From NCBI GenBank assembly GCA_976226885.1, contig OZ320318.1, forward strand, positions 26,536,001 through 26,600,000: a DNA stretch of 64,000 nucleotides. Reading direction: 5' to 3'. The notes under the pieces are model-generated. The model did not search any database, had not been told where the DNA came from, and worked only from the letters and a program-made list of their open reading frames with translations. Origin of the DNA: Iphione sp. A-MEVVRFRX5. Its lineage: Eukaryota. The translations under genes were made by a program, and so were the position numbers. Each line of letters begins with the position of its first letter. Position 1 is the stretch's first letter. Below, one piece after another: positions 1,287 through 31,307 of the stretch.

Positions 1287-1733
1287 GCTGCTATATGTTT
1301 TTTATTCATAATTTATACTTGTGTGAAACTTGTATCAGTGGAACAATAAGGACAATACATCGTCTCCTCGACTGATTGACACGCACATGTATATAACCCA
1401 GTCCTATGTATTAAGGTGTGCATCATTAACTCCACTTAAACTATGTACCAGAGCGGGGAACGACAAACCAGTCTGGTCCCTCCTTTATGCTCATGATGAC
1501 ACCCCTAGGTATGATTTCTCAGCCCAGCATTAGTTCCCGTAAGACCTAATAAGGACCTCCTCGTGCTCCCACCTACTCACACACTTTAGTACGGCGTAGA
1601 GCTAAGGACTTAAGCTAACCACGCGGTCCGCCTGCCTAGATGGAACGCTTTCCCTGCCAAGAATGTTGTGGAGAGAGAGCGAGAAAGAGAGAACAACACA
1701 AACCATGTGGCACCTTCCTTGGTGTTCTTTCAG

Positions 1734-1937
1734 TTAACCAGCACTTGCTGTCCAGAGGGGCGAGGCGGTGTCGGCGAGCGGGAACTTCCGGGCCAAGTAC
1801 CCTCGGCCACCGCTGGGGGCGCTGGCTGCGCCATCACGTACACGTGCTGCTTCTGCAGCCGGCGCTTTCCGCACAAGGGTCACTACCTGGCTCATCTTCG
1901 CGGACACACCAGCGACCTGACTGCCGCTCAGTCATAG
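1734..1937 (+). CDS. Alternative terminal exon A: single C2H2 zinc finger
   Basis: Acceptor ggtgttctttcag|TTA (AG ends at 1733, phase 0). Reads LTSTCCPEG...YTCCFCSRRFPHKGHYLAHLRGHTSDLTAAQS*, a canonical C-x2-C-x12-H-x3-H, with no ATG after the acceptor. AATAAA at 2669. Confidence 0.78.
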   Translation, partial: LTSTCCPEGRGGVGERELPGQVPSATAGGAGCAITYTCCFCSRRFPHKGHYLAHLRGHTSDLTAAQS

Positions 1938-3033
1938 AAGCTCCGCCCATCGCCCCATCACCCAGGCGGGCGACAAACTCCAAATGCTGACACAGGAGGA
2001 CATTGCGGGATTTTTTAGCGCTGCACATGTCTATATCCGCCTACTTAAATGATGTTTATGTATTAGGAGATGGAACACTATATACGCGTGTGCAGCTTAT
2101 TTGATTTTACATTGCATAAGTGTAGTTCTATTGACTTTATTTTACATAACATAGGACATTCTGCTGACTTCATTTGGCTTGATCTAAGTGCATTCTGTCG
2201 ACTTTATTTATATAACTTGGATACATTCTATTGATTTGATATTAAGAAACATTCTAGTGTTATAGACTTACATGACAGCACGCTACCAAGTTGATTCTAC
2301 ACTATCTATAGAGAGTATTAATCAACCTTTATTCGCGTGTACACACATATATATGTAGAAAGATACTATGCTGTGCACTGTTTTAGTGTTTACATGTACA
2401 TGTACATGTCTATAGTTTGGTTGGCAAGCATATTTGACACCTGTAATTACTTAAATGTATGCATCAGCCTGATAAAAAGCGAACATTTTCTGGAAATATG
2501 TTAACAAATACCGAGACCCATCTAACAAATGTCCCTTCTTTCCACAAATAGAGTAGGACACAATCCATTTGAGTCCCATATTTGTATCTTATGAGACTTA
2601 TTTATATAATGTGACTGCAGCTAGCACGAGTTCATGTGGGGTCTCAGAAGATTTCTGTCCCCATAATTAATAAAGATATCTGTAAATGCTGCTTTGAAAA
2701 CCGCACAAGTGATGTCATAAGTGGACGTTTGAAGAACAACTATTATCCGTGTTTAAATCTGTGTTGAGTAATTGTTCATGATGCCTTGGGTTTTGATATT
2801 TCACTAAAAGCTTAATTAGAACTATGACGCCTGATCATTTTTTTTTTTAAATCAGGTTTGAATGATTTTCTTGTTTTAAATGAAACAGTTATTCGTCATA
2901 ATTAGTCGCTTGCAGCCGCAACTGGGTGGTGTGCCCGGCCTTTTGACCTGGACGTGAATGCTGGGCCTCATTTGGTGGGCTGGCACTGGAATGACTGGAA
3001 TAGGAATGACCAGGCACTGTGGTCTCATTACAG

Positions 3034-3255
3034 ATGGACACATGGGCGCAGACGCGGCGCTTCCACGCAGGCACCAAACGCAACGTGTGCGGCCTGTGCG
3101 GCAAGGAGTTTAAGCATTCCTGGATGCTGAGGCGACACGCACTCACCCACTCGGGAGAGAAGCCCTTCAAGTGTCCGATGTGCGCCAAATGTTTCAACCA
3201 GAAGGAGCACGTCAAGTCGCACCTGGCCCGAGTGCATTGTGAGAAACGTTCATAG
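3034..3255 (+). CDS. Alternative terminal exon B: C2H2 zinc-finger doublet
   Basis: Acceptor ggtctcattacag|ATG (phase 0). VCGLCGKEFKHSWMLRRHALTH-SGEKPF-KCPMCAKCFNQKEHVKSHLARVH, stop at 3253-3255. Confidence 0.87.
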   Translation: MDTWAQTRRFHAGTKRNVCGLCGKEFKHSWMLRRHALTHSGEKPFKCPMCAKCFNQKEHVKSHLARVHCEKRS

Positions 3256-3502
3256 TTGTGCGGAGATCGACCTTGCCCTTGATGCACAAACTTGTGCGTG
3301 CCCGCCCCTTCAGCCTAACCCCCCCCCCCCCCCACCCTAAACCCCCACCCCCACCCCCGCCCCCAATTATGAGAACCCGGCCGCCTGAGGAGAGGAAGAA
3401 CACTGAGAAGGGCTCACGAGGAGGTCCTCTACAACTGAGCGGCTCAGTTGAAAAGGGGCGGGTTGTGTCAGAGTCGTGTGTTGTCGGGAGCTTTTGTTAC
3501 AG

Positions 3503-3720
3503 ACCGTCGGTCGGACCCCGACGGCAAGGCTTGCCGCTGGCTGTTGATGTAATCCGGCTGTGAGCCTGATCTGCACCTGACATTTTTTTGGCGTGGAAAG
3601 CAGGTGGAGACCACGCCAGGACATGCACCTATTGACCCAGCATGGAGAAGAACAGTAGAGTATGCCGCTTTGTTCGAGGTCTTTGAATCAGAAGGATATT
3701 AATCGGAGAGCTCTCTCCCT
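3503..3720 (+). pseudogene. Decayed zinc-finger doublet cassette (B/G-like)
   Basis: Acceptor gcttttgttacag|ACC. The phase-0 frame has internal stops: ...SLICT*HFFGVESRWRPRQDMHLLTQHGEEQ*SMPLCSRSLNQKD. This aligns by eye to B (HSGEKPFKCPMCAKCFNQKE) and G (ASRWKLERH). Confidence 0.58.
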
Positions 3721-4602
3721 TTGGCCTATACTTCTCAGACAGACACGACTTCTCAGACTGTCCTGAAGGAACGGATTTGCACGCAGAGCAGAATAATCAT
3801 ATCAGCATCAGGATGAAACGTCACCTGTCTGCCAGTCATCGCAGCTGGATGACGTTCGCGTAACTTGTGTTGGTATCAGTCGATAGTACAGCAACCCACT
3901 GAACTTAGTATTATTAATGAGTTAACTATTTCGCCCCCCCCTAAAAAAACGCGCTGTTTAATGCACCGTGTATCATTTCATATCCACATAGTTTGAAAGG
4001 AAATCTCCTGATAATTTTGCCAATTTGGACTGCTCCGGAACATTTAATTAAAAATGCTTCTTAGATTGCAACACTGAGTGCGTTACCTCAGTTGAACTGC
4101 CTGATTGTTTTCCTGTGAGGAGGGAAAAAACTGAATGGGTTTCTGAGGGTAATCTATGGAATGTGATTCTCAAAGGGGAGTTTTAGTAATGAAAAATTCC
4201 TTTTCGATAATATTTGGGATAAAATCTTGCGGATCGGTTTGTTGGGAGAAGGTCTCGAGGGGCCACCCACCAGTTTATCACGCATGCAGGAGTTTGTACG
4301 CAGTCGGACTCCTTCCCTCTGAGAGTGAACTTTTCTTTTTAGTGTAGGCGCTAGAAAGGTACCGAGCTAAGACCGTGTTTACTTCCGCGCAGGCTGTAAA
4401 GGACTCATAATTCGTAATAACCGTTGACTTTTTTTGCTTGCTATTCCAGTGGAGCCTCCCCCCCTTGGCAGACGTGGTCTGTTGTTACGACACCTTAGGT
4501 GTACGGTCGCTGCCATTGATGGAACGCGTTTAAAAACCCCCTCTGCATTTGCTGACGAGTGCTGTTTCAACTGAATCAGTGGCGTTGTTTGCCTCTTTCC
4601 AG

Positions 4603-4830
4603 ATTGGGCGGATACTGCAGGCGGCGTCGGCGCTCGCGTCCAAACACTGCGACGGCCAGAAAGAGCTTAGCGTGTGCCCCATCTGTGGCCGCCAGTTCCG
4701 TTGCAGATATAGACTAGAGCGCCACCTGCCCGGCCACTCGGGAATGAAGAACTATCACTGTCCAAAATGTGGCAAGGCGTTCATTCGAAAGGACTCGGTG
4801 GCCAGACACTCGAGAGCTTGTTTGCTATAG
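4603..4830 (+). CDS. Alternative terminal exon C: C2H2 + C2HC finger doublet
   Basis: Acceptor gtttgcctctttccag|ATT (phase 0). CPICGRQFRCRYRLERHLPGH-SGMKNY-HCPKCGKAFIRKDSVARHSRAC, then TAG. AATAAA at 4841-4846. Confidence 0.87.
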   Translation: MGRILQAASALASKHCDGQKELSVCPICGRQFRCRYRLERHLPGHSGMKNYHCPKCGKAFIRKDSVARHSRACLL

Positions 4831-5263
4831 GGCGAGGCGGAATAAAAAGGTGGCTTTGATTCGGGTGGAAAAAAACGGCCATAAGTAACATTTATCTTTT
4901 TTTAAAAAAAAATGTCAGTGTATACGTAGATCCGGAAGTATTGAATAATCTTCCTGGACATGTTAGTCGATGTCTTCTTTTTTTTATTTTTTTTTGTTAT
5001 AGTCTTTCGTGGGATATGTGATGTTTTGAGTGCGTTTAATTTATTCCTTTTGTATTAGGCCGTAGATCCTTTCATGGTCTACTATGAAAGTATCAGTCTC
5101 CCACTCAGGCAGCAACACTTAGCAGTTAGACCGTCTTGGGAGTTCTAGTCCTTCGTCTTTTATTCCCCTATTTTCGATTTGTCCGTATAAACTGATGACG
5201 TAGGCAACTTTCGCATATTGTTTCCACAAGAAGTAGACGTGAACCGCCATTGGCCATGTGCAG

Positions 5264-5405
5264 AGGAAATTTCTCTTGCCAAATCCTGTTCCGATGCGGT
5301 ATGGATGCCACGAAAACGAATTCCTTTTCCTCGTCCATTTGGCTTCCCACAGCGGATAATGCAAATGGCCCCCCATCGGCCACGAGTAAAGACTTGAAAG
5401 AGGCA
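5264..5405 (+). pseudogene. Decayed zinc-finger cassette (C-like)
   Basis: cag|AGG frame reads RKF...FLVHLASHSG*CKWPPIGHE*RLER, resembling exon C CPICGRQF..YRLERHLPGHSG with deletions. Confidence 0.4.
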
Positions 5406-5753
5406 GCGTCGGCTTAATAGCATCTCTCCCGCCCGTTTCTCCCTCTGTTCGAATCGTATTGCAAGTGATTTTGGCGCCAGTTCAATCTGGATCGTATGGC
5501 ACTGCGATGTCGGCCGGGACTGATCGGTCGTGCATCCACCGTGGCGGCTCCGCTGCTGCCGTAGGACGGGCTCCACACGGACGAGCAGGCGACGAGGAAT
5601 CCGACTAGTCATTCAATGGTAGAGAGAGAGTAAGCCCAGCCCGTTTTACCTGTTCTCAGCATCTTTCTACCCTTGATGTGTGATACTACATGCCCCTCCC
5701 CGCGAACAGTGATATATATACATGGAGATGTATATATCGGTTCACCTTGTCAG

Positions 5754-5915
5754 CGTGGTGTGTGTGTTCATTGCATGTAAGAAGTTGATGGGCTAAACTA
5801 ACAAGTCAACACCCCCCCCCCAAAAAAAAGTTTTGAATTGGGCAACTTGATGCATCTCATGCACATTTACATCGTTGCTATCTGTCAAAATTGTCTCAGA
5901 AGGTGTGATTTCTAA
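5754..5915 (+). pseudogene. Possible decayed zinc-finger doublet cassette
   Basis: Acceptor ttcaccttgtcag|CGT gives RGVCVHCM*. Downstream, in another frame, NLMHLMH..AICQNCLRRCDF. Confidence 0.33.
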
Positions 5916-6392
5916 GTAATCAACACAACCTATCAATATACAGTCTCTTCCCTGCAGATAATTGGACCCAGGGATTTTTTTAAAACATCATTTCACATGC
6001 ATTTCGTTTATTACATCCCAGAACTTTCACGAGACGTGAGGTCCCGGCTCATGTTCTGTAGCACCATACGTTCTTCTTTTACAGTGATGTTTCAGTCAGA
6101 AATTTATCCTGTTTGTTAATAACGTCTAGTCTGTAGAATCTGCCCACTGTTCTAAAATTCACGTACCAAAGTCCGCTTTTGATTTGGTCGTGACGTTCGT
6201 TTATTGGTCAGGGTATCCGCCAATGCGCACACACGAACACATACAAGCACACACATATATAAATACACAGTGTACAGTTGTATATATAATGTATGAGTGC
6301 ACAGTGTATATGTATTATCTACAATCTTAAAGGAAAATTGTAGTTTCATGTTTTTGTACTTAATTTCAAGAGATTGATACTATATTTCCCAG

Positions 6393-6530
6393 GACGGCCT
6401 TTGTCCAGTTCTGTTCTTGGCAGTATTGAGTGAAATCGTACTGAAGTACCACCAAATGTCCGAATAATCAGATGAGCGATATAGGTTTCTGTATGCTTGT
6501 ACATGCGTGTGTATATATAGATTTTCCATT
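6393..6530 (+). pseudogene. Decayed zinc-finger doublet cassette
   Basis: Strong acceptor tatatttcccag|GAC. One phase-0 frame reads DGLCPV(L)FLAVLSEIVLKYHQMS(E)*SDER..YACTCVCIYRFS. The x12 spacing, conserved Leu/His, a TGERP-like linker and the start of finger 2 are retained. Confidence 0.52.
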
Positions 6531-6711
6531 TGTTGTAATGAAATAAAAAAAAAAAACATTAACCAGACCGCTGCTTTTGTTGGCATCCTTTTTCTGTCCC
6601 TCTTTATGCGGACGTCCATTATATGGATTATACCATGTATTCCAACCGTTTCCCTCGTGGGCGTACTATCAATTCTGACAAGTGAAGTCCCTTGTATATA
6701 TTTCTTTACAG

Positions 6712-7038
6712 ATCGCCCGCAAATCCATGAGCTCCACTCCTAAGTCGGAGCTGAGCTGGGTGTTTGTTTGTCCGTTGTGTGGGAAACAATTCGCCCAGCG
6801 GAAACATGACTTCGAATGCCACATACGTACGCATACCGGCGAAAAACCGTTTGCTTGCGATCTGTGCGGCCAACGCTTCAATGATCCCCGCAACATGAAA
6901 AGGCACCGCAACAAATATTGCTGTGTGCGCTTGGAAAAAGCGGCGTTGTCCCAGCTAGAATCTCAGCGGAGCATTGAATGGCCCCGAAATACAGCCCCAT
7001 TACCCAGGTCTCCACGGAGACTTCCCAGTGACCAGTAA
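6712..7038 (+). CDS. Alternative terminal exon D: extended-spacing C2H2 + C2HC finger doublet
   Basis: Acceptor tatttctttacag|ATC (phase 0). CPLCGKQFAQRKHDFECHIRTH-TGEKPF-ACDLCGQRFNDPRNMKRHRNKYC plus a C-terminal tail, stop at 7036-7038. Confidence 0.87.
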   Translation: MARKSMSSTPKSELSWVFVCPLCGKQFAQRKHDFECHIRTHTGEKPFACDLCGQRFNDPRNMKRHRNKYCCVRLEKAALSQLESQRSIEWPRNTAPLPRSPRRLPSDQ

Positions 7039-7677
7039 AAACGAAAGCTGTAAAAAGACTATTTGGCCACCACCTCACAGGGACGTAGGAATGACGCAGT
7101 CTTACCATGTGACCCTCCATCATAACCTTGTAGGTCTATCTCCTCCCAAAGTATTGAATGATGTTTCGCTGTGGATGAGTGTTACTGGCATATTTTTATG
7201 TAATTCAAAAAAATTTAAATGATAGAAATAAGGACATGTATATAACAGATTGGAATTGTATACATACATGCTCACTCAAACATTAACAATTAGTTCCACT
7301 TAACAACAGCAGACCCGACAATGGACATTGTAGGCCCCTATAGTCCCCCACCTCCAGGAGGAGTGAGGGACCTTAGGATCACTGCTGCCTTACAGTCTGA
7401 TCATCTATCATAACCTTGTAGGTCTTCTAGCCCCGATACCTTGATATCAAATGAACTTGAAAGTTGGATATTATACTAACCCATGGACACTTTGCTACTG
7501 GCTTATTTCTGTTGTATTTAAAGTAAGTTAAAGGTGAAAATATTACATTTCAAGATATTCTGCTCACCAGCACATATACATACACTCACTGTGTATAATG
7601 CAACATTGTGATAGTCAACTGTGTGCACTCTGGCATAGAATTCAAATACACGGTATATCATCACGTTGGTAAATTCT

Positions 7678-7678
<1 letters not shown>

Positions 7679-7746
<68 letters not shown>
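7679..7746. repeat. (CT)n microsatellite
   Basis: Directly visible. Confidence 0.98.
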
Positions 7747-7753
<7 letters not shown>

Positions 7754-8138
7754 ACCTTCCTCGTATATATCATTGGCTTTTTATACCGTGTATCTGTAAA
7801 AGACATTTGGTGTTTGTGCTTTGAGGCCAATTAAATGAAACTTGCAAAGATACCGACTCGAGTCTTTCTGTCGCTCCATAATTTCCCCAATATATGTATA
7901 TTTCCCAACAGGCAGTCCAATCTTACTTCCTCTGTATTCCTCCCTGAATGTCTGCGTGACAAACACACAAGCTTTTAGTTCATCAGCTTTCTAATCACGA
8001 GCCTTCAAATAGGCAGGTGTAAAACTGATATCCACAGAAGTGGGAAAGGCCCAGCAGCTTTATATCACTTAGTTCTGTCTTATTGCTCCAATCCGACTCA
8101 GTGGAGTGACTCCGACCTCTTGCTCCTCGTCATTGCAG

Positions 8139-8465
8139 GTGCTCGCCAACACCACCACCCCTCCAGGCGGTCCTTTCCACGACCCCGCTCGCCACCCAGC
8201 CCCCGCGGTGCTGGTGGGGCTGGGGGCCACGGCATGGCGCAGTGCCGTGCTGGAGTGTGGGGTGTGCGGCAAAGTTTTCCATCGGGGGCGCAAGCGGGAC
8301 TTCCAGTGCCACATGCGCTCGCACACAGGCGAGAAGCCCTTCTCCTGTGAGGTCTGTGGCCTGCGCTTCTCCGACCCTCGCAGCATGAGCAGACACCGAC
8401 GGACTCAGCACCCCGCGCTGAGCACCGCGCCCACAGGAGAGCAGCTCTGGCAGGCACCTCGTTAG
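8139..8465 (+). CDS. Alternative terminal exon E: extended-spacing C2H2 finger doublet (paralog of D)
   Basis: Acceptor ctcctcgtcattgcag|GTG (phase 0). CGVCGKVFHRGRKRDFQCHMRSH-TGEKPF-SCEVCGLRFSDPRSMSRHRRTQH, stop at 8463-8465. Confidence 0.87.
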   Translation: MLANTTTPPGGPFHDPARHPAPAVLVGLGATAWRSAVLECGVCGKVFHRGRKRDFQCHMRSHTGEKPFSCEVCGLRFSDPRSMSRHRRTQHPALSTAPTGEQLWQAPR

Positions 8466-9604
8466 ACAGCATCACTCATCCACCCCCCCCCCCCTCTGGA
8501 TGCTACCCGCTACCAACCCAGGCAGCAGTGCGCCTGAACAGATCAGTTCTTGCAAAGACAGTCATTTCTCGTTTGTTTTGTAATAATCCACCGGGGAAAT
8601 TGGAAAAGGAGCCCTGCGCTTTATACAGTTCCTCATAGGACACGAGGTTTAAAAAAAAGCAAGTTAGGAGGCGAGTCGGTCACCACCACACTCTCTTCAA
8701 GATGTGATATTACATGTGTTTTGCGAGGCACTGGACATGCAGCCACTTTGTCCGAAGTATCATTCAATCCATGTGATACAAGACAAAATGGATTAACATT
8801 TTACAATATTCTTTTAATCTATCGTAGTGTTAGGTCAACGCATATTATTATTCAAACCATAAGGGAAATTCTTGTCACGATATTGGCGATTAATGTACAA
8901 AGTACTTCTGAAAGAATGAAAACTTAAATCCCTTACCAAGGACCTGCTGAATCGGATATAACGGATATTTGAGAACATTATTAACGAGGCATAGGGACAA
9001 AGCGTTTGTAAAACTCACATTTATGACAGCCAAATACGCAAATTTATATACTTTTTTCAGCACATGCTCACAAATACAGAGATGTTGCAAGGAAAACACT
9101 TCTGGAATCACAAAATCTGGTCTCCATCGAGCAACTTTAAATCGGTTATGGATAACTTATTCACGTTACGTACTATTTATTCCTTTCATATTCGGTGAAT
9201 TGTTTTTATGTACTTTGCGAAGTAAATGTTACTTTAACTGCAGGTACTTGTTGATTTTGCTTTCGAGATTGCTTTATTTTGGCAACAGGAATAGACTCCT
9301 CCTCTAACATGCAGGAAAAAGAATCTTCTCCCGTTATTTTTACGGGCTATGAATGCGGTTGAGTTAAGTATCGAAAAAACACTACAACCAACAATGGACA
9401 CCTCTGTTCACCTTTATTTAAATACATCACAGTGAAATCGGGACTCGCCCCATTTCAGAGCACATACCACGAGTCGCTCGTACCACATCCCCTTTGGGTT
9501 ATGCGAGTAGCTCATCGCTATCACTCATTTCTCACATTAATAAACATGCACATGTCCGTGTCATGGTCTGCAGAGGGTAACTCTCCGTCCTCTGTCTTTT
9601 CCAG

Positions 9605-9901
9605 ATGTTGCCTTATCGAACGCCTCGGAAAGGCCAGTCGAGGCGGAACGAACCTAGAAACTTTGCCTGTACGGTGTGTGGCAAGCGCTTCCCCGATGGG
9701 TGGAAGCTTGCCAACCACAGACGTTTACACACGGGCGAGCGGCCTTTCCAGTGTCCTCTCTGTTTCTATGCGGCCAACGTCAAGGGGAATTTGAAATCCC
9801 ATATGAAAACCGTTCATAGAATTAAACCATCGCTCGATAAGCCCGGGACGTTTAAGCCTAAAGATGACGACGACTTCCCTACATCGACCATGGACAACTA
9901 A
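9605..9901 (+). CDS. Alternative terminal exon F: C2H2 finger doublet
   Basis: Acceptor ctctgtcttttccag|ATG (phase 0). CTVCGKRFPDGWKLANHRRLH-TGERPF-QCPLCFYAANVKGNLKSHMKTVH. AATAAA at 10058. Confidence 0.87.
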   Translation: MLPYRTPRKGQSRRNEPRNFACTVCGKRFPDGWKLANHRRLHTGERPFQCPLCFYAANVKGNLKSHMKTVHRIKPSLDKPGTFKPKDDDDFPTSTMDN

Positions 9902-10963
9902 ATAGAAAGTCAGACGTTTACGAAAGCCCTGTCATGTAAGGACTGTTAGCTCTCACCCTTTATTGTTTTTCTAAAGAATGAAGTAGGATTAGTTGACGGA
10001 TTCGATTTATGACACCATTTGAAACGGAAGCAGCAAGTGCAACAAAGGAATCGAGGAAATAAAATCACCCAAACTCTTATTAAAATCGCAACCTCATGTT
10101 GTACACGTCGGTCGGGCGGTGGAATGAACAGGCTTTCAGGGAATAAAAACACTCATGCCTGTAAAAGATAGTTGAAGATGTACAGGGGATATACATTCCA
10201 GTAGTAGTCAGCCCATGAGTCTGATGTTGGTTTTATTCACATAACTGCTCAAATATTCAAATACAAATTCAAATAAAGATGTCTCGTCTGAATGCCTTCA
10301 ATATAGCGTCTTGAATTTAAGAGCACATCGGTATTTGGACCAGTCGTTTGCTTTTTATCAGTAATCACGAGTGGCCTCGACAATAATTGTCCCGGATCAA
10401 TAAAAACAAATTGCAAATTGAGAGTAATGTCCCCCCATTGCATTAGATCCGCGATATTTCAAGCAAAATAAGTCCCAAGTAGTGTATTCAGTGTTTTCAG
10501 TACTGAAGCTGTGCACGATATAGCAACATTTAAAAATCTATAAATATTCAGGCACCGTACATTTGGTTCTTGGAGGTTTTCCTGGCCTGTAATATAGATA
10601 TCCGCGTAGTAATGGTGTATCTGTCTATCTCTTCAGTGTCAATCTCACCCAGTCTTTTAGTCTGTTGTTTGGTCATGTGACAGACTGGTGACAACTACAC
10701 ACTAATATCTCACATAGAGATCACGTATATTGTACTAATATGTATAAATCCTGCAGATTAAACAATACCTTATACGGGTTTGACAGAAATCTGTGCGTGT
10801 ATATATGAGAGAGAGAGAGAGGCGGCCAGTACTCGTAATGATGGAAACTACGAGAGGTAGATATCACTTAGACGTTTCTGACGACACAGGCACTGTCACT
10901 ATTGAGATAGTCAAAACGCAGACTTCACCCGAGATTTCATTTATCTCCTTCGTTATATTTCAG

Positions 10964-11218
10964 GGAGACCCCGCGGAGTGGGCAGCCTTTGTGGTCCCCA
11001 GCAGTGGCAGGTCGCAGGGCCCGCGTGGAGGATCTCACATGTGTACGGTATGCGGGAAACGGTTCGCAAGCCGCTGGAAGTTGGAGCGCCATGAAAGAGT
11101 TCATACCGGCGAGAAGCCCTTCAAATGCCGCTTCTGCGACTATGCGGCCAACCAGAAGGCAATGACCAAAGCGCACATGATGTGCAGGCATAAATACTTT
11201 GCAGGCGACAGTTCATAA
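10964..11218 (+). CDS. Alternative terminal exon G: C2H2 finger doublet (paralog of F)
   Basis: Acceptor cttcgttatatttcag|GGA (phase 0). CTVCGKRFASRWKLERHERVH-TGEKPF-KCRFCDYAANQKAMTKAHMMCRH, stop at 11216-11218. Confidence 0.87.
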   Translation, partial: GDPAEWAAFVVPSSGRSQGPRGGSHMCTVCGKRFASRWKLERHERVHTGEKPFKCRFCDYAANQKAMTKAHMMCRHKYFAGDSS

Positions 11219-13135: not shown

Positions 13136-13860
13136 TCTTCGCACTAGGTAGGAGGTATGTACATTTGCATGTACCATCTTGGAGAAAGTGGAGGTTAATT
13201 CACGATGGAACTGTTTTGAAGTCGCGCCACACGGATGTTCAGTTTGAGAGTTCGAATACTGATCCGAACAGTTCATTAATTTGGAGGAGTTTGAAATGTT
13301 TTAGTAGGGTAACGTTTTCAGTTTATCAATAGCCTATTTAGTCCCACTGAAGGTCTCAAGATATTTGAGAGTTTGTTGGAAATGAATGAAAATATATGCA
13401 CTAGACTAAGACATACATGCAATTTAAATTCAGAATGCACTATGTACTCCATAATAGTACATAAGGGAGAATATTTGATATTCATGCGTGTATTCAGAAC
13501 TTTGGAATGAAAGCATTACGAAGGATTACAGTCTTTCGAGTAAATTTTATATAAAAACAGGATTCGAGCAGTTTTCTACACACCAATGCTATAGAAAAAA
13601 CTGCCATTTTTTTTCAAGAGACTAGATTATTCAGCTATCTATAATTTAAGGTCTGTAGTAATGTCAAGAAACAAGAACTGATACACGCAGCTTTACCAGC
13701 ATTAGGCCATTAGATTACACAACATATATCCATAAATGTGTTGACCCTACCGTTGTTCTCTACTTTTTACAAAAACTGCATTTTATAGACCTTCAAGATA
13801 CCTTGAAGAATTCATTTTGGGGGGAGATATTCGCCGTTCACTGGAACAATTCGATTTCAG

Positions 13861-14204
13861 ATGCAGTCACTGATCACTTTGCAAAGGTGCCACAAGGGAA
13901 TCATCAAAGGAAGTGAGGTGGAATCCATGCTCCATGCAATTTACCGAGAAGTGTGTCTGAAGGCTTGTCGTTGGAAATCGGATCTGGAGATACATCTGAA
14001 AAATGCTCACTATATAGAGTTCAGTGTGAAGTTGGCCAGACCGGGCTGGGAAATGTATGTTTACTGGCAATAAAACTGCAGGAAGATCCAAATAAAACAT
14101 CTCCGAACAAAGAAATATTGAGAGGCCACATAGTTGATATACACGTATGGGTGAAAATAAAGCACATTAAACACAGGGGCGGACAGTGCAATTTCCTCTC
14201 GTAG
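13861..14204 (+). pseudogene. Recently inactivated or variant zinc-finger doublet cassette
   Basis: Acceptor aattcgatttcag|ATG (phase 0). Finger 1 YR-EVCLKACRWKSDLEIHLKNAH lacks the first Cys but otherwise has x12-H-x4-H. Finger 2 is in a shifted frame (ORF 13953..14204): QCEV(G)...NKEILRGHIVDIH. Confidence 0.65.
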
Positions 14205-26741: not shown

Positions 26742-28475
26742 TCACCCAGTTTCCAGGCCACCAAGGCTTTGGTTGTAGTATTTGTCGAACACAGAGGCCC
26801 AGGGCACCTCAGCAGCACAGTCTGGCATCACGGCCTCATCGGCCTCGGACACGAAGACGTTGTCATTGAGAATGTCGGAGGAGGCCTCGGACGGTGTTTC
26901 GGTGAATTGGTCGGAAGAAGAGGTGGGCAGGGTGCCCAGATTCACCAAGGTGTAGGCGGCCCAGCGACTCACCCTCTCCCGGTCGAAGGTGGATCCGTAG
27001 TCCGGGTAGGTTTGCAGATCGAGCGTCCGCGGACTGTTATCGAGCTCCTCCTCGTCGAAGAAGAGCTCCAGCTTGAGCTCGAGTTCACGCTCGTAGACGC
27101 CGCAGTACTCGGAGTCGGGGCTCGGAGAGCATGGGGAACACTGGGCGTGGTGGACGTGCAGCAGGGGGCCTTTCAAGTCGTCGCCCAGACACCCACTATC
27201 CCCTCCGACTGGCAGCAGCCCAGCCTTTGCACGGTGTTCCTGTAGTGGAGCGTGGGGATGGCTTGAGAAGTGGTCCTCTTGCTGTCGCGGCGGGTTGCCA
27301 TCTGCGGCTAGTGATGGTCGATTGTCACAGTACTGAAAGGGCATCGGCGGGCGGTGCAGGTCTACCTGAGTCGTATTGTCGACCATTTCAGCGCGACGGC
27401 CGGCCAGACCCCGGCCCGACTTCCGATGCCTTCCATGCTGACGGCTGCCATTGCATGTGTTGCCGTTGCCACTCTCGTTACTGTTGCCTATGCCACTGCT
27501 GCTGTTACTAGTTCGTGGCGACTGCGCCTGACTTCCCATCGACGTCCGCTGGGAGGCGCGCGATGTATTGTTCCCCACTCTCGTCGGACCTAAAGGCTGA
27601 GATGGAGGCGGTGGTGGGAGGAGCGGGAGGGGCCCAACCCGCATGGGGAAATTCTCGTAAATGGCTTGGCTCTCCGCTTTTCTCCTGCTGCCTGTGACAT
27701 TAGGAGAAGTACTGGTTCGTAAAGGCGAATTGGTCGCCGTGTTCGAACAGTTGCTCGCGGCGGCTCCAGCGCGCGTGGTCTCCCTCTTAGGGCACAACCC
27801 ACCGGGAGAACATATAACAATGTCGTCCTTACGGGGTGATGCAGGAGCCCGGGTGCTTGCGGTGTGATTTGTCAGGCACGTTGCGGCGTTCTCATCTCCC
27901 GACTTTTCTACAGAAACCAGCGGCGGCGCGTTGTTCAACTCGTTGCTCGGGGCCTCTCCCCCAGATCCAGACATCCCCGTTGCTATATCATGGCCAGTAT
28001 TAAGGATAGGAGTCACGTCGCCATGAATCTGGAAGACCCAGTCAGCATGTGGCCGCAGCAATTCAAACGGCTGTGATAAAGAGTGGCGGACGAGCCCAGG
28101 AAGGTGGCGGCGAGGGGAACCCGTTTCGAGCAGTGACGCGGAACGCCGCCTCTTATCGAGCAGCTCCGCGCCATACTCCTCGTCGATTTTGCTTGTCACT
28201 ACGTCAATTTGGTTCACGAGCACGCGTAAGTCACCGACGACGGTTTTCAGCTCTCCCAGTACATTCTCCAGGTCGTCGACCACAGCCTTAACCTGCTCTT
28301 TGACAACGACCTGCTCGCCGCTTCCTGCACTACTGGTGGCTGCACTGCTGCTTCTGTTGCTGCCTATGTCGCACTCCTTACAACCATCACTGATGCATTT
28401 CACAGCACTGCTCTTACTGCTCGCCTGTCTGGTGGGGCTGGGGGTTCCGCCCTTACTATCTTCTTTTATATCCAT
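26742..28475 (-). CDS. PRR16: PRR16 (Largen)/INSYN1-family protein, single coding exon (~577 aa from the first ATG)
   Basis: The 586-codon ORF is by far the longest in the window. VKEQVKAVVDDLENVLGELKTVVGDLRVLVNQIDVVTSKI matches the recalled PRR16 coiled coil (VKEQIKIIVEDLELVLGDLKDVAKELKEVVDQIDTLTSDL). It has a Pro/Ser-rich body and an RERV motif. First in-frame ATG at 28475; the track start at 28502 is TTG. Acceptors lie just upstream (AG at about 28530 and 28591). PRR16 versus INSYN1 orthology is unresolved. Confidence 0.8.
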   Translation of the reverse strand: MDIKEDSKGGTPSPTRQASSKSSAVKCISDGCKECDIGSNRSSSAATSSAGSGEQVVVKEQVKAVVDDLENVLGELKTVVGDLRVLVNQIDVVTSKIDEEYGAELLDKRRRSASLLETGSPRRHLPGLVRHSLSQPFELLRPHADWVFQIHGDVTPILNTGHDIATGMSGSGGEAPSNELNNAPPLVSVEKSGDENAATCLTNHTASTRAPASPRKDDIVICSPGGLCPKRETTRAGAAASNCSNTATNSPLRTSTSPNVTGSRRKAESQAIYENFPMRVGPLPLLPPPPPSQPLGPTRVGNNTSRASQRTSMGSQAQSPRTSNSSSGIGNSNESGNGNTCNGSRQHGRHRKSGRGLAGRRAEMVDNTTQVDLHRPPMPFQYCDNRPSLAADGNPPRQQEDHFSSHPHAPLQEHRAKAGLLPVGGDSGCLGDDLKGPLLHVHHAQCSPCSPSPDSEYCGVYERELELKLELFFDEEELDNSPRTLDLQTYPDYGSTFDRERVSRWAAYTLVNLGTLPTSSSDQFTETPSEASSDILNDNVFVSEADEAVMPDCAAEVPWASVFDKYYNQSLGGLETG

Positions 28476-29309
28476 ATCGACCTTGAGTGTCGGGGATGTC
28501 AAGTTAAGGAAGTGAGGTCGACACTGAACCTGAGTATGATATACATACTATGAATGCATTCCGTGTCAAAACTCCACTATGAGTATTTACCTGCGGAAGA
28601 TTGAAAATAGTATTACACGTTTATAAGGAAACAGATGAGAATTGCAAGTAATTATATAAACTAAGGTGCGCATGATATCGCAGTTGTTTTCATATGATTT
28701 TACCGTCTAGTATTTGTTAATTCTGTTTGCTAAGTAATTTGAAATCACTTAGACATACGTTAAAAGTTGAGAGCTATGCAATCATGTTTTAGATTAAATG
28801 CCGCCATGATGCGCGACTGGTTCTAGTGAGTGAAATTAACGTTCTGAGACTGGAGACAGATCCACTTTCACGGACATACAGCTGCGAATCAATAGGCTTT
28901 TAGATCTCCGATGTGGCGATGAAATAGGGGCCTCTACAGACCGCGTGAATTAATCACGTATGCGTGAGAAAAACCATTAGAGATGCTTGATGAGCTTGAT
29001 GATCTCTCCTACTCCATCCAAATTATCCGGATGGTGCTATATACATAGCTGTGAGGATAATGAACGTAGTGACAATTCAAAGACTTCAATGCGGCTTTCT
29101 GGGAACTGATCGGTGATCAAGAACGTACAGAACACTCTATTCTTTCCTCACTGCTCGGAGTAGACAATAAACAGATAGCGTTGTTAATTTTCTAGTGATT
29201 GCGATTATCAATCCAAAGTTTCAATCCATAATTTCTTGGATTCTATCCAAAATAACGACAATTGTGAAGTGTGCGGTTTCTGTTTGCAATTCGGTCCAAG
29301 GAATACATA

Positions 29310-31160: not shown

Positions 31161-31307
31161 NNNNNNNNNNNNNNNNNNNNNNNNNNNNNNNNNNNNNNNN
31201 NNNNNNNNNNNNNNNNNNNNNNNNNNNNNNNNNNNNNNNNNNNNNNNNNNNNNNNNNNNNNNNNNNNNNNNNNNNNNNNNNNNNNNNNNNNNNNNNNNNN
31301 NNNNNNN
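31161..31307. other. Assembly gap (147 N)
   Basis: Run of N. ORFs crossing it are artefacts, and contiguity across it is not guaranteed. Confidence 0.99.

Follow-up and report, generated by a model that had tools for sequence, protein, structure and literature searches.

A probable lola-like array of alternative zinc-finger last exons, likely served by a non-BTB constant module, in a probable spiralian

The closest described systems are the Drosophila genes lola, fruitless, broad and tramtrack, to which mod(mdg4), with its FLYWCH modules, can be added. These genes combine a constant N-terminal self-association region with one of many terminal exons located on the same strand, and in lola every terminal exon provides its own linker, two C2H2 fingers and a stop codon. 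The lola gene yields 20 isoforms, of which 17 bear fingers (PMC11426971). In a survey published in eLife in 2024, this multi-isoform architecture was tied to TTK-type BTB domains, which were found in arthropods only, with none in annelids or molluscs (PMC11426971). The locus presented here lies in a 64-kb stretch of contig OZ320318.1 (the "window", always meant at its full length), of which positions 1734-11218 are probably the variable 3' part of a single transcription-factor gene with lola-like alternative zinc-finger last exons. The locus is probably a lola-like isoform generator in a spiralian, equipped with a constant module other than BTB. It differs from lola in two respects: the homologous annelid loci use a one-exon helix-hairpin constant domain of ~55 aa and not a TTK-type BTB, and the relatives are annelid and molluscan, not arthropod. 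The protocadherin and UGT1A loci also join many alternative exons to a constant part, but there the variable exons open the transcript, each behind a promoter of its own, whereas those of the window would be last exons chosen by splicing and polyadenylation. Full-text literature searches, of incomplete coverage, returned no paper that describes loci of this kind in animals other than arthropods, and many mollusc isoforms are already listed by annotation pipelines.

The array is composed of seven C2H2 cassettes (c1 to c7), all on the + strand between positions 1734 and 11218; their spans are given below from acceptor to stop. Cassette c1 (1734-1937) opens behind the acceptor ttctttcag with a 37-aa linker, followed by a single finger and a stop. 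Cassette c2 (3034-3255) has a weaker acceptor, an ATG at the junction and two fingers. In c3 (4603-4830), a C2H2 finger is followed by a C2HC finger, and an AATAAA (4841) stands 11 nt past the stop. Cassettes c4 (6712-7038) and c5 (8139-8465) are paralogues with two fingers each: c4 displays a one-residue insertion in its first finger and a 37-aa tail before the stop, and c5 possesses a 38-aa linker. Cassette c6 (9605-9901) carries two fingers, the second of the AANVKGN type, a 27-aa tail and an AATAAA at 10058. The final cassette, c7 (10964-11218), carries two fingers, the first of the RWKLE type. This inventory agrees with the first-pass annotation, which had described seven same-strand cassettes 1.3-2.1 kb apart (1300-2109 nt, acceptor to acceptor), each with one or two fingers before a stop, and AATAAA signals at 2669, 4841 and 10058, all three of which are present. 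Cassettes c2 to c7 match Pfam zf-C2H2 or zf-H2C2_2 at 3e-8 to 2e-12. The match of c1 is weak (0.002), yet its spacing is the canonical CX2CX12HX3H. In the opening finger of c4 and of c5, 13-14 residues separate the second Cys from the first His. A six-frame regular-expression scan and a purpose-built hidden Markov model (HMM) of finger pairs revealed no further convincing C2H2 finger in the 64 kb.

Acceptors were scored with a simple pyrimidine-tract/CAG matrix over every AG of the window (n=3694). Six of the seven cassette acceptors are the best AG within the 300 nt ahead of the fingers and fall at the 99.3-99.8th percentile of these AGs (99.3rd for c1), the acceptor of c2 (3034) being at the 94th. 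All seven, at 1734, 3034, 4603, 6712, 8139, 9605 and 10964, have phase 0 with respect to the fingers' reading frame, as had been claimed, and each lies past the last in-frame stop; with phase unconstrained, the chance that seven out of seven share one phase is ~(1/3)^6. An ATG stands exactly at the junction in c2 and c6 only, which bears out the earlier count of five junctions devoid of ATG. In c1, c3 and c5, there is no in-frame ATG at all ahead of the fingers, and these three are therefore not free-standing genes. Donor-like sites are absent 3' of the fingers in all seven cassettes; only two occur within cassettes, both weak and located at or ahead of the first finger. Since donor-like sites are missing after the fingers, the cassettes are read as terminal exons and not as links of a chain. 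Their common strand and phase could also suit a series of internal exons in a single long multi-finger mRNA, but with an in-frame stop 3-37 codons past the last finger in each of c1 to c7, and no donor-like site behind it, such an mRNA is hardly credible. Poly(A) hexamers are found 3' of every cassette, mostly 0.7-1.1 kb past the stop, and are given little weight. The array displays one trait of lola-type BTB zinc-finger genes (the TTK group), namely alternative terminal exons, each with its own stop and usually a C2H2 pair.

The cassettes have also to be considered as independent small zinc-finger genes in tandem, each of which would own a promoter and a short 5' exon lying in the spacers of 1.3-2.1 kb. 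The length of the spacers would accommodate both elements, and an in-frame ATG is present in four of the seven cassettes. Members of an independent tandem C2H2 cluster of the KZFP-like kind have their own start codon and open reading frame, however, and c1, c3 and c5, which lack one, are unable to start translation alone. The phase 0 common to all seven acceptors and their top-percentile ranks (above the 99th for six of seven) equally speak against independent genes, as do the annelid relatives described below.

The cassettes appear to be old and maintained. Neither DNA-level repeats nor transposon flanks were seen around them, and synonymous sites are saturated between paralogous cassettes, the closest pairs being c4/c5 (62% identity over the fingers) and c6/c7 (47% identity), so that dN/dS is not quantifiable. 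With no flanking repeats and with saturated synonymous sites, the cassettes are neither recent duplicates nor transposon cargo. The zinc ligands are kept in 13 of 13 fingers and a TGEKPF-type linker in six of the seven cassettes, which, despite the synonymous saturation, argues for long-term selection. In favour of a silent, decaying remnant array that has lost its expression, one clearly dead fragment exists at 3623-3697 (+ strand), a stop-interrupted copy of the finger-linker part of c2 (tblastn E 0.017; weak HMM match). A possible second one, very weak and not relied on, resembles an RWK..LE.H finger at 13951-14010 (+ strand; HMM i-Evalue 0.5), 2.7 kb past the last cassette. Both indicate turnover. 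With ligands and linkers kept as above under synonymous saturation, and neither frameshift nor internal stop in any of the seven cassettes, however, a silent remnant is very improbable. The two fragments suggest, as a side observation, birth and death of cassettes within the array.

The named relatives of the cassettes come from annelids. A search with c7 among 5.8 billion protein clusters, under a length filter of 78-246 aa, returned as top match CAPTEDRAFT_131093 of Capitella teleta, an 87-aa gene model whose finger pair is 63% identical. The locus of this gene model (L005, scaffold KB291800.1) harbors at least 10 same-strand cassettes in 10 kb, and in each of them a pyrimidine tract with a phase-0 AG precedes two fingers and the stop. 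A constant exon (CAPTEDRAFT_209229) is located 2.9 kb upstream of this array: it starts with an ATG, runs for 231 codons and ends on the phase-0 donor AAG/gtgggc (the slash marks the exon end). Cassette c6 is 57% identical to the L005 cassette 13478-13684, and both c6 and c7 (63%) are nearer to particular Capitella cassettes than to each other. The two loci have in common their phase-0 cassettes on one strand, with two fingers and a stop, and the signatures RWKLE.H and AANVKGN; the Capitella array differs by tighter packing (0.2-3 kb), first fingers mostly of the CX4C type, a visible constant exon and a piggyBac-type transposase within the array. This transposase is an intact open reading frame (ORF) of 612 codons at L005 10631-12469 (+ strand; Pfam DDE_Tnp_1_7, E 1e-75) lying between the first and second cassettes. 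A second constant exon followed by an array is found in L009, a Logan contig of 8.5 kb: 248 codons ending on the phase-0 donor ATG/gtgggt precede four phase-0 cassettes with stops. In both loci the donor is in phase 0, as are the seven acceptors of the window, and a constant exon with its array is directly visible in two other genomes.

These loci bear further on the independent-gene alternative. The Capitella annotation does treat such cassettes as separate genes, in line with it. Some of the homologous cassettes, however, are only 127-236 nt apart, from stop to next acceptor, and a distance of 127 nt leaves no room for promoters. Furthermore, the transcript-derived protein P0018 joins the constant exon to a cassette, against independent small genes, which are on the whole unlikely.

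Transcript relatives were found by using the first 80 residues of the Capitella constant exon as query. P0018, a complete ORF derived from a transcriptome shotgun assembly (TSA), is a spliced isoform in which the constant exon runs directly into a linker, followed by two fingers and a stop codon. The same join from constant exon to fingers is observed in ANP93620.1 (P0032), a cDNA product of Urechis unicinctus, so that a constant exon joined to a cassette is found in the relatives P0018, P0032 and P0102. Past the same junction, a protein cluster on Logan contigs, which are probably transcripts, displays either a single-finger cassette or read-through sequence. The query also matched three Capitella paralogues. 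At the CAPTEDRAFT_221202 locus, one finger exon and no array are visible, 5.8 kb of the locus being N, and the contig of CAPTEDRAFT_199592 ends too near the gene to show an array. One TSA-derived sequence stands apart: in P0017 (EukProt GHVO01027994.1.p1), the same junction, which follows ...ASQK in the annelid constant exon, leads into a complete thioredoxin of mitochondrial type that opens on its own Met, through either a chimeric assembly or a splice into an adjacent gene.

The Urechis protein was deposited as "specificity protein 1". Sp/KLF proteins are built with three C-terminal fingers and a Btd box. ANP93620.1, in contrast, opens with an MKPEQERL N-terminal domain and, as far as the record goes, ends with two fingers. 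It shares with the family described here the same N-terminal domain, a disordered middle and C-terminal fingers, and one isoform is recorded. Judged by this layout, it is probably misnamed; a literature search on the Urechis Sp1 returned Sp1 papers without bearing on it.

The N-terminal domain of the constant exon (hereafter N-domain) defines a family of its own. An exhaustive HMMER search collected 770 representative proteins that carry it at E <= 0.001, nearly all at the N-terminus. Its core covers ~55 residues (alignment A2), with a consensus opening on MKPEQERV and followed by LL.DTVTLLCKNGL. Members with fingers possess one to three of them at the extreme C-terminus, a layout that the window cassettes fit with one or two fingers before the stop. 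Neither a Pfam family for the domain nor a sequence relative in the PDB was found. The AlphaFold2 model displays one long helix (3-23) followed by a β-hairpin (29-40, 44-55), with a predicted local distance difference test score (pLDDT) above 90 over the core. Foldseek returned nothing significant among PDB and Swiss-Prot models; among AFDB clusters and the ESM Atlas, it returned only uncharacterised C2H2 proteins, plus Atlas clusters from Annelida and Mollusca. These C2H2 proteins are, to judge by their accession series, from Capitella, Helobdella, Dimorphilus and Biomphalaria. The Annelida and Mollusca Atlas clusters bear automatic names up to "isoform X9" and "isoform X25", and among the clusters that a feature search with P0018 yielded are molluscan ones that bear the names "isoform X14" and "X18" and have zinc-finger Pfams only. 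A helix plus a hairpin is unlikely to be stable alone, and on this ground and by analogy with BTB in lola, the N-domain is probably a self-association module; we infer that it oligomerises. In P0036, the helix-hairpin domain is present in two tandem copies (~residues 1-65 and 77-146).

This domain bears directly on whether the locus is a true lola-type gene, with an upstream BTB constant region feeding the cassettes. The variable-region architecture equals that of lola; no BTB is present in the 64 kb, and the constant exon of the window locus, lying beyond them, might bear one. However, the nearest relatives of the cassettes sit in loci whose constant exon has no BTB: no BTB Pfam hit was obtained in the Capitella constant exon, nor in P0018, a complete isoform whose Pfam hits are zinc-finger only. 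Moreover, the TTK-type BTB linked to multi-isoform genes is reported missing from annelids and molluscs (PMC11426971). A BTB constant region is therefore quite unlikely. The first-pass annotation had seen in the array the variable region of a lola/mod(mdg4)-like gene with a possibly BTB-bearing constant exon. Its terminal-exon part is supported by the strong phase-0 acceptors, the stop close behind the fingers, the lack of donors after them, the three cassettes with no start, the Capitella and L009 homologues and P0018; its BTB part is not supported, the N-terminus of the homologous constant exons being the helix-hairpin domain.

The favoured reading is that 1734-11218 is the array of a gene whose upstream phase-0 constant exon is of the annelid N-domain type, and, judged from sequence comparison, this full model is fairly probable. 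The gene would be transcribed from left to right, with its promoter and constant coding exon upstream of base 1. We infer that such a constant exon feeds the array: the single phase-0 donor at its end would be joined to one among the phase-0 acceptors, at least seven in number, the cassettes being used in a mutually exclusive manner. The linker, particular to each cassette, the one or two C2H2 fingers and the stop codon would come from the cassette chosen, with cleavage and polyadenylation of the transcript taking place 3' of this cassette. A single locus would thereby give rise to a protein family in which a common N-terminus is combined with short DNA-binding modules that differ. Judged by its homology with CAPTEDRAFT_209229 and the loci related to it, the constant part would most likely be a single exon of ~230-250 codons, and not BTB. 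It would encode the ~55-aa helix plus β-hairpin domain, followed by a basic, acidic and glutamine-rich disordered sequence.

Several observations weigh against this reading. The window locus is known from DNA sequence alone and its constant exon lies beyond it. A tblastn search with more than 150 family members detected no N-domain in the 64 kb, so that the constant exon must sit upstream of base 1, where the array may also extend. The kinship between the window and Capitella rests on finger pairs of 51-58 aa, and the C2H2 scaffold alone easily gives 40-50% identity. The first finger is CX4C in most annelid cassettes and CX2C in the window. Cassettes c2, c4, c6 and c7, with their in-frame ATG, might in principle be translated independently, and the poly(A) hexamers are far from most stops. 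Finally, the "isoform X.." names are automatic cluster labels and are read as labels alone.

The rest of the window is sparse. It contains, apart from the cassettes, a single-exon ORF of 586 aa (26742-28502, - strand), convergent to the finger array and 15.5 kb away from it, and nothing else that looks coding. The 586-aa protein is largely disordered and Ser/Pro-rich, with a short predicted helical stretch near its N-terminus, and matches no Pfam family. Its best homologues, on ENA contigs, are 50% and 41% identical, and a synteny check found no C2H2 finger within 10 kb of the gene of the 50%-identity homologue. Atlas look-alikes of this protein and of c7 are generic only, and a search against Rfam yielded no match. 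Other features include a (CAGA)n microsatellite (356-453), a C-rich tract directly past the c2 stop (3300-3365), a (CT)n tract between c4 and c5 (7680-7760) and a run of 147 N (31161-31307), which is a gap or masked sequence. The source had at first been thought to be apparently a chordate. This attribution finds no support: the named relatives of the cassettes and of the N-domain family are all annelid, the look-alike clusters are molluscan, and the 586-aa neighbour has no annotated chordate homologue.

Chances are about even that annelids, molluscs and the source of the window share an old gene family in which a constant exon serves many zinc-finger last exons, on a non-BTB domain, as an independent, non-arthropod version of the lola strategy; c6 and c7 would then have been kept, relative to Capitella, for hundreds of millions of years. 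Alternative zinc-finger last exons have been regarded as peculiar to the TTK-BTB genes of arthropods (PMC11426971), and here they would occur with a different constant domain that has hundreds of relatives. The same design is seen as genomic arrays in at least three genomes, with transcript support in relatives. If true, the annotation of several genes would be corrected, as the Capitella cassettes now stand as separate tiny genes and the Urechis member is labelled Sp1. The N-domain would be a new candidate oligomerisation domain, and the family would offer a second independent system in which to ask why such a gene design evolves.

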